A stretch of 64,000 bases of DNA, from positions 172,871 through 236,870 of the forward strand of contig NIVC01001793.1 in the NCBI GenBank assembly GCA_002269645.1, read 5' to 3'. Source of the stretch: Macrostomum lignano. Lineage: Eukaryota. The position numbers and the translations under genes were made by a program. Shown here piece after piece: positions 430-45,500 of this stretch (position 1 is the stretch's first letter; each line of letters begins with the position of its first letter). Below the pieces are notes generated by a model. The model saw nothing but the letters and a program-made list of their open reading frames with translations, searched no databases and was not told the origin of the DNA.

Positions 430-532
430 GACAGCAGCATTATTAACGTCTCTCTGGCTACAACACCAAGATTACTAGCCAGAGACATGGACTTCGGAAT
501 TAATCAAACGGTACTCTACAAAATTCAGTCGG
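430..532 (+). CDS. cadherin exon 1 (in window)
   Basis: cag|GAC...TCG G|gtgagt; [34 protein letters not shown]. Confidence 0.85.
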
Positions 533-3500
533 GTGAGTACATATCACAATTCGATTATCGATGATTTTCCTTTAATTCATACTGTATGGCATCAAAATGT
601 TTTTATGAATCACTCGCACTTCAGACTCGTACCGTTCACCTGGTAATCTCAAGTTTCACTTTCTAATTCTCGATCGCGATATTAATAATTTGTGAAACTT
701 TCATGACGGATTTAGTAACTGTGATTGTCGCCTTATTTTAATTAATATCTCTATTCTAGCTTCTGGACCAGCTAACCTGAGTACCACTGGTTTGCTGAGT
801 AAGACTTGATTGTTGTTTTATCGTTTTCTTTCTGGTGAATAAATCATTATTATCTTCTATTTTCTTGCGTTGGTAAATTATTGTTAAACCACTTTAAAGC
901 TCACTTTCAGGGAGGTTATTGATATAGGTTTATTTTGCGGGATTTAATCGATCACTTTCCCAGACATATTGCAAGGATTATTGTATGTATCTAAATAAGC
1001 CAGCTTCTCTCTTCTCTTCTTTCTAGACTCGAGAATTTCTTCATTAAATTTTGTCTATGGTAAGAATGTGGGGGCTTCGCCCCCACACCCCAGCAGGGTC
1101 TTCGCCCCCACACCCCAGCAGGGGTTTCGCCCCCACACCCCAGCAGGGGCTTCGCCCCCACACCCCCAGCAGGGGTTTCGCCCCCACACCCCAGCAGGGG
1201 CTTCGCCCCCACACCCCAGCAGGGGTTTCGCCCCCACACCCCAGCAGGGGCTTCGCCCCCACACCCCCAGCAGGGGTTTCGCCCCCACACCCCAGCAGGG
1301 GTTTCGCCCCCACACCCCAGCAGGGGCTTCGCCCCCACACCCCAGCAGGGGTTTCGCCCCCACACCCCAGCAGGGGCTTCGCCCCCACACCCCCAGCAGG
1401 GGCTTCGCCCCCACACCCCCAGCAGGGGTTTCGCCCCCACACCCCAGCAGGGGCTTCGCCCCCACACCCCATCCCCAACTTCAACCATAGACATACAAAT
1501 ATGGCTCCGGGATTTATCTGAATACATCCCGCAAAATTAAAGTAGTTTAAATAAGATATTCTATGGGTTTAAGGTTGGTATGTGATTAAATCCCGAGAGC
1601 CGAAGGGTCACACACATTGAATTTAATCCAAGATATGCTTACTAAAGTAGTGGAGCTTTTGTCTATGGTAGCAAGGCTGCAGCAAAAACAAAAAGAGATA
1701 AAAGAGGGAACTAAAACGCGTGTTTTAGGTGTCCCTGTTCAATGCGTGTAGACACAAATGGGCTGCAAAATGCTATATATAGTTTAGTCATGGACAACTG
1801 CAGTACAATGACGCTATGGTCGAATTTCTTAGATTTTAAATTTCTTAAATTTTAAAATAGGAATTAATGTAATATATTTTTTTTAAACTTCAATTAACAA
1901 TGGTTGCTGTCTTGTAGTCCGGACTAGGGGTTCTAGCCGAAAAATGATGTCTTTAGAAAGTCAAGAATCATAGTTTAAAAAATGAAACGAATGTACTTTA
2001 AGATTAACCCCGTGACGTCACCTTTGCCACAGGCGCCAGCCTGTCCGGCCAGCCGTTCCTGCAAATCGATCAAGAGACCGGCGAGTTCAAAGTGATTCGA
2101 ATTTTTGATCGAGAGGCGCTGAGCTCGAATGAAATTCTACTGCAAGTGAAGGTGAGCTCGGCTACACGGCTGTCTGGGAGTCTGTGGTGTCTGTTTTTGA
2201 GTCTCTAATGCCTGTCCTTGAGTCTGTAATGCGTGACTTTGAGTCAGTAATGCTGTTTTTGAGTCTATAATACCTGTCTTTGAGTCTGTAATGTCTGTCT
2301 TTGAGTCTGCATTGTCTGTCTTTGGGTCTGTATTATCTGTCTTTGAGTCTGCATTGCCTGTCTTTGAGTCTGTAATGTCTGTCTTTGAGTCTGCATTATC
2401 TGTCTTTGAGTCTGCATTGTCTGTCTTTGAGTCTGCATTGTCTGTCTTTGAGTCTGCATTGTCTGTCTTTGAGTCTGCATTGTCTGTCTTTGAGTCTGCA
2501 TTGTCTGTCTTTGAGTCTGCATTGTCTGTCTTTGAGTCTGCATTGTCTGTCTTTGAGTCTTTATTGTCTATATTAGAGTCTGTAATGCCTGTTTTATGAG
2601 TCCGTAATGCCTGCCTTGGAGCATGTCAATAACGTCACCCCCAGTTCTGTCTATTAGACTGTCATATCATTCTCATGCATCGTCAAGTTTGCTTTAGTGA
2701 CATTTATCTGCAAGCCAAACAAACTTTCATTAGCAAAAGTAGAAGATTGCAAGTATAAGCAGTGAAGCCGTGACTCTCCCCCTTCTTACTGCGGGTCAGC
2801 AAGAATTGAGCTGAAGTGTGACCCGAAGCAGCTGGAAAATTGACACAAACTCTCTGCAGTTCAGTCCCGGTGGGCGGGGCGAGACCATGCCAGGGAGAGA
2901 CAAAAGAAGCTCTTTAAGTAGTTTTTTGCCTCCGACATTGTCGCACAGTTCTGGCTGTGCCACCCCCCCCCTTGACAGCAATAAAAAAGCAACAGAAATG
3001 AATAAGCAGAAAGCGAAAGCAGACAGTAATGCATCGGGCTGTGAAGTACTTTGTGCCAATAAGACTGAATAAGATATGAGAAATGTGAGCCGACGGGTGG
3101 AGCTTCTGGCAAATATGAGCTCGATAAGTGCCAGTCAACTGCCTACTTAGGTAAACTGATAACAGAAAGCAACTCCTCATTGAGCTGAATGAGATGACCG
3201 CAGACATTAATATCTCAAATCTAAATTTGGCATTTTTCTCCACTCCTAAAATGGAGCACTTTTATCCCCTAACTAAACTGGGCATTTATCTCCCCCTAGC
3301 TAAACTGGTCATTTATCTCCCCCTAACTAAATCTCCCCCTAGCTAAACTGGTCATTTATCTCTCCCTAACTAAATCTCCCCCTAGCTAAACTGGTCATTT
3401 ATCTCCCTCTAACTAAATCTCCCCCTAGCTAAACTGGTCATTTATCTCCCCCTAACTAAATCTCCCCCTAGCTAAACTGGTCATTTATCTCCCCCTAACT

Positions 3501-42500: not shown

Positions 42501-45500
42501 CGACAGACAAATAAAGGAAAGTTTTACAATAGTATAGACATAATATAATAAAACTAGATTCAACATACAAAGTAGCCAAAGTAGACATAGTAGGCAAACT
42601 AGACAAAGTAGAAGACGTGGACAAAGTAGAAAAATAGACAAAATTGACAAAGTAGACAAAGTAGATGAAGTATACAAGGGTAGACAAAGTAGATAAGAGT
42701 AGACAAAGTAGACAAGAGTAGACAAAGTAGACAAAATAGACAAAGTAGACAAGAGTAGACAAAGTAGACAAGAGTAGACAAAATAAACAATAATAGACAA
42801 AGTAGACATAGTAGGCAACTAAGTAGACAAAGTAGACAAAGTAGACAAAGCAGATAATGTAGACAATACTAGACAAAGTAGACAAAGTAGATAAAGTAGA
42901 CAAGAGTAGACAAAGTAGACTAGAGTAAACAAAGTTGACAAAGTAGACATTGCTCAGCCTGCGCACAAACATCCCAAACAGGCCACTGACAAAGACGCCA
43001 ACGCCACAATTCGATATTCGCTGACGAACGAGACCGATCGATTTTATGCGGACTCAGTCAGCGGCCAGTTGCGCACAAAGGTGATTTTCTCGTCAGCCGG
43101 CACGGTGCCTGTGCGCTGCCAGGCCACAGACGGGGCTTTTGTAACCGTCTTGGACCTGCTGGTGAGCCTGCTGACAGACTCCAGCCGGCTGGTGCTGACT
43201 GCTGGTATTGCGCCGGACAAATTCGGCCAGCACGAGTCTCTGATCCGGACGAATTTGTCCGGCCTGCTTGGCGCCGATCTGAGAATTGAGAAATTTGAGA
43301 GCGCCGTCAGCGGAATCGGGAGCGACGCCAAGGTGAGGGGGGAAGAGTCGGACTGAGATAGTATAGATATTGATTAGGTGCCTGGATATTGATTAGGTTC
43401 CTGGATATTGATTAGGTTCCTGGATATTGATTAGGTGCCTGGATATTGGTTTATGTGCCTGGATATTGATTAGGTGCCTGGATATTGGTTTATGTGCCTG
43501 GATATTGATTAGGTGCCTGGATATTGGTTTATGTGCCTGGATATTGATTGAGGTGTCTACATATTGATTAGTTGCCAGGATATTGATTATACCTGGATAT
43601 TTATTGAGGTGCCAAAATATTTGTTGATTAGGTGCCTGGATATTGATAGAAGCGTCTGGATATTGATTAAGGTGTCTAAATATTGATTAGGTGCGAGGAT
43701 ATTGATTTTGTACCTGGATATTTATTGAGGTGCCTGGATATTGATTAAGGTGTCTGGATGTTGATTACGTGCCTGGATATTGATTAGGTACTTTGGTATA
43801 GTTACGAGCTTGGATATGCAAGAAAAAGTACCCAGATGTAGGTATTGTCGATCAAATTTAGACTGGATATAATTTTTGGTGCCTGCATCTTCCCAGTTGC
43901 TTTGGTAGATTGAGTAAACAAAATTGGACATTTTGAAAAGTTCTGAGATCATTCTGAAATAGCGGTCCTAACGACGCAGAGTTTTCACCGCCCCATCACT
44001 CCAGGTGGACCCCGCCAAGACGGACGCCTACCTGTACGCCTACAACCCGAGCACGGGCGCTCTGCTCACCCAAGCCGACCTGCGCGCCCGAATTGAGGCC
44101 AAACGAGCCGAAATCGTCGCTTTCTTCGCCTCGCTCGGCGCCACATTCGACGGCGTCCGTTCGCCGTCGGACGCCGGCGTCAACGCTACGACAACAACGG
44201 CGACACCGGATGTGTTGGCGAACGGCGGACTGAGCTCGGCCGAGGTGGCCCTCATCGTTCTCGGGGTGCTGTTCTTCCTGGCCGTCCTGGGCTGCATAGT
44301 CGTGCTGTGCTGGCTGTGCAAGCGGAAGGCGCAGCGGCGCAAGCGGATCCTGGCCGCCGGCGGGGACCGCGAAGGCATCGTCGGCGCTTCCGGTTTGAAG
44401 GCCAACGGATCAACGACGGCTGCCGCGGCACCCGGGCCTCTGGCGGCGATGTACCAGGCCAACAATCCAGCCAATAGGGACGCAGACAGCGTCGTTGGCA
44501 ACAGCCGGGAGCGTCTTGTTGCTAAGAAGGAGATCCACGGTTTGTACCAATCGGCTCCAAGCACAACGGATTCACTGAGAAGTGGCGACAATGTGTGAGT
44601 GTCAAGGGGATTGAGGCTTCAAATCCACGCTATTTTATTCGTCTATTAGTTTAGTTTGGGTCCGTTTCATGACGCTACAATAAGAGTACTTTCACAAAAA
44701 AGTTTTTCTTTGGGTTAATTAATAAAAACGTCGGTGAATTTTCCGATTTAAGCATACAGTTTTGCGGCCTTGAAAAGGGAGTGCCCCCAGTCTGTGTGGC
44801 CTTCAAGATAGAACTTCCCTGTGCTGTGTGGCCTTGAAGATAGAACTTCCCTGTGCTGTGTGGCCTTGAAGATGGAATTCCATGTCCTGTGTGGGCCTTG
44901 AAGATGGAGTTCCCCTGGTCTGTGTGGCCTTGAAGATGGAATTCTCTTGGTCTGTGTGGCCTTGAAGCTGGAATTCTCCTATCTGGATGGCCTTGAATAT
45001 GGAAATGCCCTGGCCTGAGTGACATCAAGAAGTTAATGCTCTCAGTCTGTGATCTTGAGGAGGAAATAACTTTACGAGACACTGTCTGTGACCTTGAGGG
45101 TAGGAAACAACCCATCAGTGACCTTGACAGTTCACTAAAAAGCTTTTTTGCAACAGTTCGCATCGTTTTTAAAGTCGTAGTAGCTTTAATTTGTTTCCTT
45201 TTGATTGCACCCGCCACTTTCAGGACTCGATTCCACTTTACGGATTTCTACTTTGACGACAAGTAATTTTTGTGCCTGTAAACCCTCTTTGTTTTACTAG
45301 CAAGGCCCTTATTCTTATCTATCAAAACTTTACCGGCTTTATCAACTCTTTGCATAGAACTGTAACCGAAATCTGTTTGCTACCGCTGCCTATAGTGATA
45401 ACTAAACACTATTTAAGTCTAATTTCCTACAGTATGATCAATTTGAACTCAACAATTGCTTTTCCTTGTGTGCCTAATTGTGAACAAATGAGCTAATCTA

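Follow-up and report, generated by a model that had tools for sequence, protein, structure and literature searches.

A giant cadherin gene of the flatworm Macrostomum lignano with a predicted membrane-adjacent domain and PCDH15-like ends

To which of the known families of giant cadherins does a very long cadherin gene of the flatworm Macrostomum lignano belong? The gene lies on contig NIVC01001793.1 of assembly GCA_002269645.1, and the stretch that we analyzed (hereafter the window) comprises 64,000 nucleotides, positions 172,871 to 236,870 of the forward strand. This is eukaryotic DNA with short exons and introns full of repeats, and DxNDx motifs number 19 on its plus strand and 1 on its minus strand. 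CDH23 has 27 extracellular cadherin (EC) repeats, and PCDH15 and Cad99C have 11. An initial annotation, made from the letters alone, had suggested a cadherin longer than CDH23 with a membrane-adjacent domain (MAD), and the count of about 32 ECs reached below bears out the length. We conclude with good confidence that the gene encodes a MAD-bearing cadherin of the Usher type, the class of PCDH15, CDH23, and CDHR2. With moderate confidence, sequence comparison would place it within the PCDH15 family, as a three-fold elongated member. The explanation that best covers all the evidence, to which we give a probability of about 0.72, is a type I MAD cadherin of ~32 ECs with PCDH15/Cad99C-like ends and ~21 extra ECs between them.

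The gene model was built with a cadherin hidden Markov model (HMM), seeded with three clean window repeats and then run iteratively over all plus-strand pieces of open reading frames (ORFs). GT-AG junctions were picked by joint splice-site and HMM score, and doubtful ones were inspected by eye. Between 430 and 44594 this gave 30 plus-strand exons, all bounded by GT-AG (Table 1), whose spliced translation, with one base restored in exon 14, runs for 3,476 amino acids without an internal stop. In order, the protein comprises 30 EC repeats, a non-cadherin domain of about 110 residues, one transmembrane (TM) helix, and a tail. The EC count of 30 is that of our own HMM; the Pfam Cadherin model (PF00028) matches in 15+13 stretches (E = 2.9e-179 and 1.1e-155). 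Thirty EC-ending linkers had been claimed initially, and the claim stands as a count of repeats but not as a count of canonical linkers, for DxNDN is present in only 19 of the 29 inter-EC linkers and about 10 are non-canonical.

Four independent lines of support bear on this model: M. lignano database fragments, the alignment to a nemertean orthologue, EC colinearity, and the Pfam scan. One M. lignano protein (P0038) is 100% identical to the model and spans exons 1 to 3, another fragment (P0039) spans exons 4 to 9, and a third (P0002) is 99% identical; several junctions are crossed by identical fragment sequence. In the alignment to the nemertean protein (P0008, from Tubulanus polymorphus), the exon junctions inside the EC array are free of gaps of six residues or longer out to 40 residues on either side. 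The least certain junction is that of exons 22 and 23, where the acceptor at 33175 has a near alternative at 33190.

The first exon in the window opens in mid-EC, directly behind an acceptor AG (428-429), and a tandem repeat with a 22-nt unit fills bases 1-384; the gene must for this reason be open at the left edge, as had been proposed at the outset. P0038 reads across the junction at 430, with SPQFSHDTYRLAFVEN before it and DSSIINV after it, and thus joins an upstream exon. Two further M. lignano proteins encoded outside the window, P0052 and P0040, represent at least two paralogues with 46-58% identity over the first ECs, and their existence indicates that the family has expanded in this species. 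In both, the repeat that matches the first EC of the window is preceded by a signal peptide, an EC1 with cysteines, and an EC2. Since the paralogues have two more ECs upstream, the repeats in the window can be numbered EC3 to EC32. The total, as judged from these sequences, would be about 32 ECs followed by MAD33, with about 94% of the gene inside the window and the two N-terminal ECs upstream of it.

What kind of domain separates the last EC from the membrane? The initial annotation had put the non-cadherin segment at about 43177 to 44150; its exact coding limits are 43165-43332 and 44005-44173. The single TM helix also expected there is encoded at 44239-44317, as read from the translation. 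Likewise in agreement with the early reading, the Pfam scan of the 3,476-residue protein gave no EGF or Laminin_G match even at E ≤ 1, and none was found in the seven relatives scanned (six full-length or long proteins and one 256-residue fragment). The lack of EGF and laminin G (LamG) domains excludes FAT, CELSR, and the classical cadherins of type III. FAT and CELSR do resemble the window protein in having many ECs, and a MAD-like domain after the last EC has been predicted for both (10.1101/460097), but their MAD is followed by EGF and LamG domains (plus GAIN/7TM in CELSR), whereas that of the window protein stands directly before the TM helix.

The best-ranking Pfam family for the C-terminal segment was PF23206 (PCDH15_12th), a model that scores above its cut-off in three relatives, including P0008 (36.4 bits) and the protein P0004 of Owenia (37.1 bits). 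With the MAD, TM helix, and tail as the query, a phmmer search that was exhaustive over 1.84 billion representative proteins gave 12 matches. Those from outside Macrostomum are cadherins aligned at their membrane-proximal end, the exception being P0010, a repeat protein of 247 residues; the species represented are an annelid, a scallop, a brachiopod, an ostracod, a nemertean, a nematode, and a starfish, whose protein is named protocadherin-15-like. A MAD-only profile built from nine sequences of this search matched, among structures in the Protein Data Bank (PDB), mouse CDH23 EC25-MAD28 (8tri, E = 2.5e-11) and five PCDH15 MAD12 entries (E = 2.5e-8 to 1.3e-7). It also matched weakly the ferredoxin-like domain of Nup54, which De-la-Torre et al. 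describe as a relative of the MAD fold (10.1101/460097). By sequence profile, the domain is homologous to the MADs of PCDH15 and CDH23. A PCDH15 strand that the initial annotation had quoted proved close to the actual mouse sequence (6c10), and the family MAD profile, which includes the window protein, aligns at that strand.

Other searches were less productive. When the MAD alone was searched against the PDB as a single sequence, only spurious beta-propeller designs ("Bagel/Cake") were returned, on the YLYAxNP strand, and a profile was needed. In word-indexed homologue searches, the MAD profile returned no more than a pair of short metagenome fragments, and the C-terminal query found only a frameshifted M. 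lignano model (P0001); the N-terminal query gave mostly unrelated protocadherin fragments together with useful M. lignano pieces.

An AlphaFold2 model of EC32 and the MAD, with the nine-sequence alignment as input, has a mean predicted local distance difference test (pLDDT) score of 86.8, with means of 86-98 for 10-residue blocks across the MAD, and the predicted order of elements is beta1-alpha1-beta2-beta3-alpha2-beta4. When this model was compared with the PDB by Foldseek, ranks 1 to 9 were all taken by PCDH15 EC-MAD12 and CDH23 EC25-MAD28 structures (6eet, 6c10, 8tri, 6bxz, 6c14, and 6c13), with E = 1e-16 to 4e-12 (2.2e-16 for 8tri), and the next match was CELSR1 (E = 5e-9). Because the top alignments span 220-226 columns, with query TM-scores up to 0.78 (0.75-0.78 for the superposition of PCDH15 EC10/11-MAD12), the packing of EC against MAD is reproduced in the model as well. 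In the predicted structure, the segment takes up a ferredoxin-like MAD fold and packs on EC32 as the MADs of PCDH15 and CDH23 do on their final ECs. Predicted fold, profile matches, and the absence of EGF and LamG domains all support the early assignment to the MAD family and away from FAT.

The question then becomes which MAD cadherin the window protein resembles most, and here the evidence that carries our reading is the register of the two ends. Four PCDH15 crystal fragments, EC1-7 (11iy), EC4-7 (5w1d), EC5-7 (6bxu), and 6bwn, which we take to be EC6-7 and which aligns at the fourth EC in the window, always align to the first four ECs in the window such that the nth of these corresponds to PCDH15 EC(n+2). 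The shorter fragments kept this register despite the possibility of a longer alignment out of register. CDH23 crystal fragments, in contrast, aligned to the N-terminal ECs at arbitrary registers without preference. A starfish PCDH15-like protein (P0009) behaves as the PCDH15 fragments would lead one to expect in this register, the best matches of its EC4-7 being the second to fifth ECs of the window. At the other end, the ECs from the 28th of the window onward and the MAD are colinear with PCDH15 EC9-MAD12 (6eet, 6c13). EC-by-EC colinearity with PCDH15 is thus found at both ends, and ~21 ECs in the middle have no counterpart. On sequence alignment, then, the protein is in PCDH15/Cad99C register over EC3-EC7 at its N-terminal end and over its last three ECs and MAD at its C-terminal end. 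It is because these N- and C-terminal modules match PCDH15 in register that "PCDH15-like" fits better than "CDH23-like."

Details of the EC array point in the same direction. PCDH15 and Cad99C, like the window protein, are type I cadherins in which the MAD immediately precedes the TM helix. EC5 has an extended A-D-x-A...RRxS loop, the same as in mouse PCDH15, and the EC5-6 linker lacks DxNDN, as does the EC30-31 linker (LLAPSRAVF), the third from the membrane. According to D'Alterio et al., the absence of Ca2+ sites at EC5/6 and EC9/10 is a conserved trait of PCDH15 and Cad99C (PMC2171266), and in the window protein the trait was found at both corresponding places, EC5-6 and the linker three ECs before the MAD. 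The EC2-3 linker has the pattern D-x-D-D-L-x-P-x-F, which in PCDH15 reads DGDDLGPMF. Relatives of the window protein share with PCDH15 two cysteines that are invariant in their EC1, which would fit the C11-C99 disulfide of PCDH15, and PDZ-type C-terminal ends (ITHL, VTSF, LTRF, and ETEV among the relatives), a PDZ-binding motif at the C terminus being characteristic of the Usher-type class. The tail is otherwise unrelated to that of PCDH15, save for a possible terminal PDZ-type motif, and instead has a DEDGNP(I/V)IIVNS motif of its own.

The nemertean protein P0008 (XP_074649083.1; 3,989 residues) extends this picture beyond flatworms. It is 35% identical to the window protein over 3,347 aligned residues, and for most of the window's 30 ECs the colinear position in it gives the best or second-best match. 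Judged by sequence, it is a clear orthologue, end to end and EC for EC, sharing the EC layout, a long EC with an insert, the MAD, and the cytoplasmic motif. The architecture, as far as sequence comparison can tell, is ancient, the same EC-for-EC layout being found in a nemertean. A scallop protein (P0005) and a Lingula protein (P0006) have in common with the window protein the N-terminal ECs, the MAD, and roughly ten ECs at the end of the array; in the middle of the array, the mollusc and brachiopod proteins are not colinear with it. Across the relatives, EC number ranges from ~9 (Owenia P0004) to at least 30 (P0005, P0008, and the window protein), with the N- and C-terminal modules in common.

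A number of observations weigh against our reading. The protein has ~32 ECs (30 in the window and 2 upstream) and not the 11 of PCDH15 and Cad99C, its MAD scores below the gathering threshold of PF23206 (15.2 versus 27 bits), and the MAD profile scores CDH23 MAD28 above PCDH15 MAD12. The spiralian proteins, the window protein among them, lack the LPC...C cysteine insert with which EC3 of deuterostome PCDH15 begins. The tip formed by EC1-2, the most diagnostic part, which in PCDH15 is stapled by a disulfide and binds CDH23 EC1-2, is encoded outside the window; a profile of the EC1 of relatives matched cadherins in general and did not separate PCDH15 from CDH23, and the same held for Foldseek with a low-confidence AlphaFold2 model of a paralogue's EC1-2 (pLDDT 66). 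A neighbour-joining tree of MADs, run with mouse CDH23 and PCDH15, did not resolve the deep nodes (bootstrap values of 9-46). The nemertean orthologue is named "cadherin-23-like" by NCBI. Finally, the assembled copy does not encode the full protein as it stands, a frameshift interrupting exon 14, and the mechanism that we propose below is drawn as a whole from relatives.

The frameshift raises the question of whether the copy in the window is a recently inactivated duplicate of a functional gene located elsewhere in this polyploid genome. It is a single 1-nt shift that lies well inside exon 14, after 25704, and outside any homopolymer, and two sets of near-identical database fragments (P0001/P0003 and P0002/P0013) would fit the presence of duplicates; M. 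lignano carries large duplicated chromosome segments. A mini-intron at 25700 was considered and rejected as too short, the shift being of a single base, and restoring one base at 25704 makes the spacing equal to that of the Tubulanus orthologue (APVF-KPES-YTASISEN). Against inactivation, the shift is the sole defect in 10.4 kb of coding sequence, and the 30 exons keep their frames, GT-AG sites, and conserved residues; because of this, an assembly indel is at least as likely. We consider a pseudogene unlikely, and it would in any case concern the state of this copy and not the identity of the gene.

As to identity, could the gene be the spiralian orthologue of CDH23, its length having drifted from 27 to 32 repeats? 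In CDH23, too, a MAD and a TM helix come after a very long series of ECs, and its EC number is of the same order though not equal. The best PDB match of the MAD profile is mouse CDH23 MAD28 (2.5e-11 versus 2.5e-8 for PCDH15), the EC1 profile of the relatives scores CDH23 EC1 at 26.8 bits and PCDH15 EC1 at 23.4, and the "cadherin-23-like" nemertean protein ends in ...GITHL, a class I PDZ-type sequence. Set against this, the exhaustive MAD search retrieved no vertebrate or echinoderm CDH23 at E ≤ 1e-3 but did retrieve a PCDH15-like protein, and CDH23 fragments find no EC-for-EC register where PCDH15 fragments all agree on one. The EC5 RRxS loop and the EC5-6 linker without Ca2+ sites are PCDH15/Cad99C traits, and the cysteines at the tips of the window protein's relatives are a further difference from CDH23. 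CDH23 has, moreover, been reported to be deuterostome-specific; the same study reported PCDH15 to be absent from an oyster (PMC10734073). Taken together, these points make orthology to CDH23 rather improbable.

A separate, protostome-wide family of MAD cadherins, sister to PCDH15 plus CDH23, would account for the likeness to PCDH15 by ancestry shared with the whole group. Such a family would consist of members that vary from ~9 to at least 30 ECs and nevertheless have common N- and C-terminal modules, that the MAD tree does not join to PCDH15 with support, and that are without the cysteine insert of deuterostome PCDH15 EC3; at least three paralogues in M. lignano (P0040, P0052, and the gene in the window) would fit as well. 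The register matches over EC3-7 and the common position of the hinge are, however, most simply explained by orthology with PCDH15, and we think it improbable that the family stands apart. Automatic names of mollusc and brachiopod relatives, together with matches of Pfam Cadherin_FAT4_N to many window repeats (a model that also matches ECs of many families), might suggest a giant cadherin of the Fat or Dachsous type. This can be set aside as very improbable, since EGF and Laminin_G domains are missing from the window protein, P0005, P0006, and P0008 alike, the MAD adjoins the TM helix with no gap versus P0008 able to hide further domains, EC1-4 of FAT4 and of DCHS1 come far down the ranking against the N-terminal profile, and DCHS is not listed as MAD-bearing in a survey of human cadherins (10.1101/460097). 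Dachsous in particular has 27 ECs, no MAD, and a long tail with catenin-binding-like motifs, and is made unlikely by the MAD and tail of the window protein, in which Pfam Cadherin_C had no match and Cadherin_C_2 only a weak one (E = 0.14) over the TM region.

The names just mentioned are those that NCBI gives to P0006 and P0012 ("protocadherin Fat 4") and P0005 ("cadherin-related tumor suppressor-like"), so that the Fat-like auto-annotation foreseen for this gene has indeed befallen its relatives. P0008, P0005, P0006, and P0012 are all uncharacterised predictions with inconsistent names, and we found no paper describing this giant cadherin family; its sequences are already public, but only as uncharacterised predictions with conflicting names. 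P0012, a 6,148-residue "Fat 4-like" protein of Pecten maximus (XP_033754776.1), contains near-identical blocks of ECs repeated several times and an internal non-cadherin stretch; it probably represents the same family in a gene model that was mis-assembled or fused. The UniProt name "LNP1" attached to P0002 and P0013, which are cytoplasmic-tail fragments corresponding to window positions 44290-46516, has no Pfam family to support it and looks like an annotation error. What is new is that a 32-EC layout with PCDH15-like ends is kept repeat for repeat from flatworm to nemertean, in an uncharacterised long relative of known proteins.

How does the gene end? The limits 430 and 44594 given by the initial annotation are real exon boundaries, but they are an acceptor and a donor, and the gene runs past both. 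The donor at 44594/44595 reads GT/GTGAGT; were the intron after 44594 retained, a stop (TGA, 44596-44598) would follow one codon on. Splicing from 44594 to the acceptor at 46341-46342 gives ...SGDNV up to the junction, exactly as in the UniProt M. lignano proteins P0002 and P0013. The exon so joined, exon 31, encodes an acidic motif of the DEDGNP(I/V)IIVNS type, of which the Tubulanus tail has the form IDEDGNPVIIVNS and an annelid relative a looser form, and in a tblastn search with the tails of eight relatives 46343-46516 was the only downstream match. The old model P0001 was tried as a guide to the 3' end and given up: it shifts frame several times relative to the window, and we reject its tail as evidence because the exons that it proposes at ~48.87 kb and ~49.5 kb run into stops in the window sequence. 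The open stretches that it took for 3' exons are 48868-49023 and 49536-49703, the latter ending ...DNSLSTAL*, a class I PDZ-type end like those of PCDH15 isoforms; their frames join exon 31 only with extra indels.

What might such a protein do? In vertebrates, MAD cadherins form the links that bear force in hair bundles and in the microvilli of the gut: PCDH15 and CDH23, the two "hearing" cadherins, are found in stereocilia and CDHR2 in brush borders, all of them actin-based protrusions. Taking the textbook value of ~4.5 nm for each EC, one would expect a filamentous ectodomain of ~140-150 nm, presumably stiffened by Ca2+ at the 19 canonical linkers and hinged at the ~10 non-canonical ones. 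In PCDH15, the MAD packs on the last EC and promotes parallel dimers near the membrane (10.1101/460097), and by analogy with MAD12 the MAD of the window protein may hold two chains parallel at the membrane. With its EC1-2 tip, the protein may bind a partner that sits on a membrane protrusion opposite. Drosophila Cad99C acts in follicle-cell microvilli, whose length is set by its ectodomain alone (PMC2171266). By analogy with these relatives, the flatworm protein may link or space microvilli or cilia, and it may bear tension; the mechanosensory or inter-microvillar role put forward initially is a putative one.

A bolder thought is that the spiralian counterpart of PCDH15 is a conserved 32-EC giant that serves, perhaps, as a one-protein tip link without CDH23. 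A single chain of ~145 nm would near the full length of the vertebrate tip link, which combines the 11 ECs of PCDH15 with the 27 of CDH23, and the elongated PCDH15-type protein might act tip to tip in homophilic fashion or reach the opposite membrane alone. We regard this as doubtful, though if true it would open the evolution of the two-cadherin tip link to direct testing in a flatworm amenable to RNA interference. The history of MAD cadherins outside vertebrates and insects is poorly charted. Should the giants described here be members of the PCDH15 family with a 32-repeat layout, the names "Fat4," "tumor suppressor-like," and "cadherin-23-like" would need correcting, and Macrostomum, in which RNA interference, transgenesis, and electron microscopy are routine, would gain a candidate link protein for its collar receptors, its microvilli, or the collars of its adhesive organs.

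Table 1. Exons and other features of the giant cadherin gene (window coordinates; ECs numbered as in the full-length protein)
Feature	Start	End	Strand	Remarks
Exon 1	430	532	+	mid-EC3; acceptor AG 428-429, donor GTGAGT; upstream junction and exons 1-3 match P0038
Exon 2	2033	2151	+	EC3; GT-AG, best joint HMM/splice score; matches P0038
Exon 3	3937	4113	+	end of EC3, start of EC4; matches P0038
Exon 4	5053	5181	+	EC4; matches P0039
Exon 5	9955	10116	+	EC4/EC5
Exon 6	12796	13140	+	EC5 with RRSTS loop, non-canonical EC5-6 linker, start of EC6
Exon 7	13548	13633	+	EC6
Exon 8	13717	13801	+	EC6; joined reading ...VVSDGTK/TATAPVQ... identical in P0039
Exon 9	19295	19747	+	EC6/EC7/EC8
Exon 10	20209	20712	+	EC8/EC9
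Exon 11	22200	22314	+	EC9
Exon 12	23290	23730	+	EC10/EC11
Exon 13	23997	24238	+	EC11/EC12
Exon 14	25439	27117	+	EC12 to EC17; largest exon (1.7 kb); 1-nt frameshift after 25704
Exon 15	27309	27563	+	EC17/EC18
Exon 16	27973	28113	+	EC18
Exon 17	28363	28716	+	EC18/EC19
Exon 18	29036	29585	+	EC19 to EC21
Exon 19	31001	31116	+	EC21
Exon 20	31197	31415	+	EC21/EC22
Exon 21	32016	32114	+	EC22
Exon 22	32495	32614	+	EC22/EC23
Exon 23	33175	33968	+	EC23 to EC25
Exon 24	34373	34775	+	EC25/EC26
Exon 25	36337	36594	+	long EC26, start of EC27
Exon 26	37475	37597	+	EC27
Exon 27	39139	39655	+	EC27 to EC29
Exon 28	41497	42392	+	EC29 to EC32
Exon 29	42982	43332	+	remainder of EC32, first half of MAD
Exon 30	44005	44594	+	second half of MAD, TM helix, first 95 residues of cytoplasmic tail
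Exon 31	46343	46516	+	cytoplasmic segment with conserved acidic motif; acceptor AG 46341-46342
MAD33 (predicted)	43165	44173	+	coded by 43165-43332 and 44005-44173, intron between
TM helix	44239	44317	+	single, followed by KRKAQRRKR; read from translation
Frameshift site	25704	25705	+	one base missing relative to conserved frame

The surroundings of the exons are highly repetitive. No convincing Pfam matches were obtained for the ORFs downstream of the gene (53996-55072, 57556-58221, and others), and a 1.5-kb tandem array with a 38/115-nt unit (50326-51865) lies 3' of the gene, with repetitive ORFs in all frames. Intron 8 contains, on the minus strand, an ORF of 1,151 residues (15557-19012) that encodes a Ty3/gypsy-type polyprotein with aspartyl protease, reverse transcriptase, RNase H, and integrase. 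Direct repeats of 150 nt, 98% identical and spaced 4,183 nt apart, lie on either side of it, and 14866-19198 is probably a long terminal repeat retrotransposon inserted in a 21-nt minisatellite. Most introns of the cadherin gene (window positions 1-44000) have at least one tandem array of their own, and the units differ: 22, 25, 21, 43, 35, 20, 21, 20, 17, and 21 nt, TTAG, 28 nt, and TTGA, and further 51/104 nt, 104 nt, TGTC, 24 nt, CAGT, 11, 24, and 23 nt, TTGA, ATAG, and 9 and 19 nt. Many of these arrays translate as long fake ORFs.

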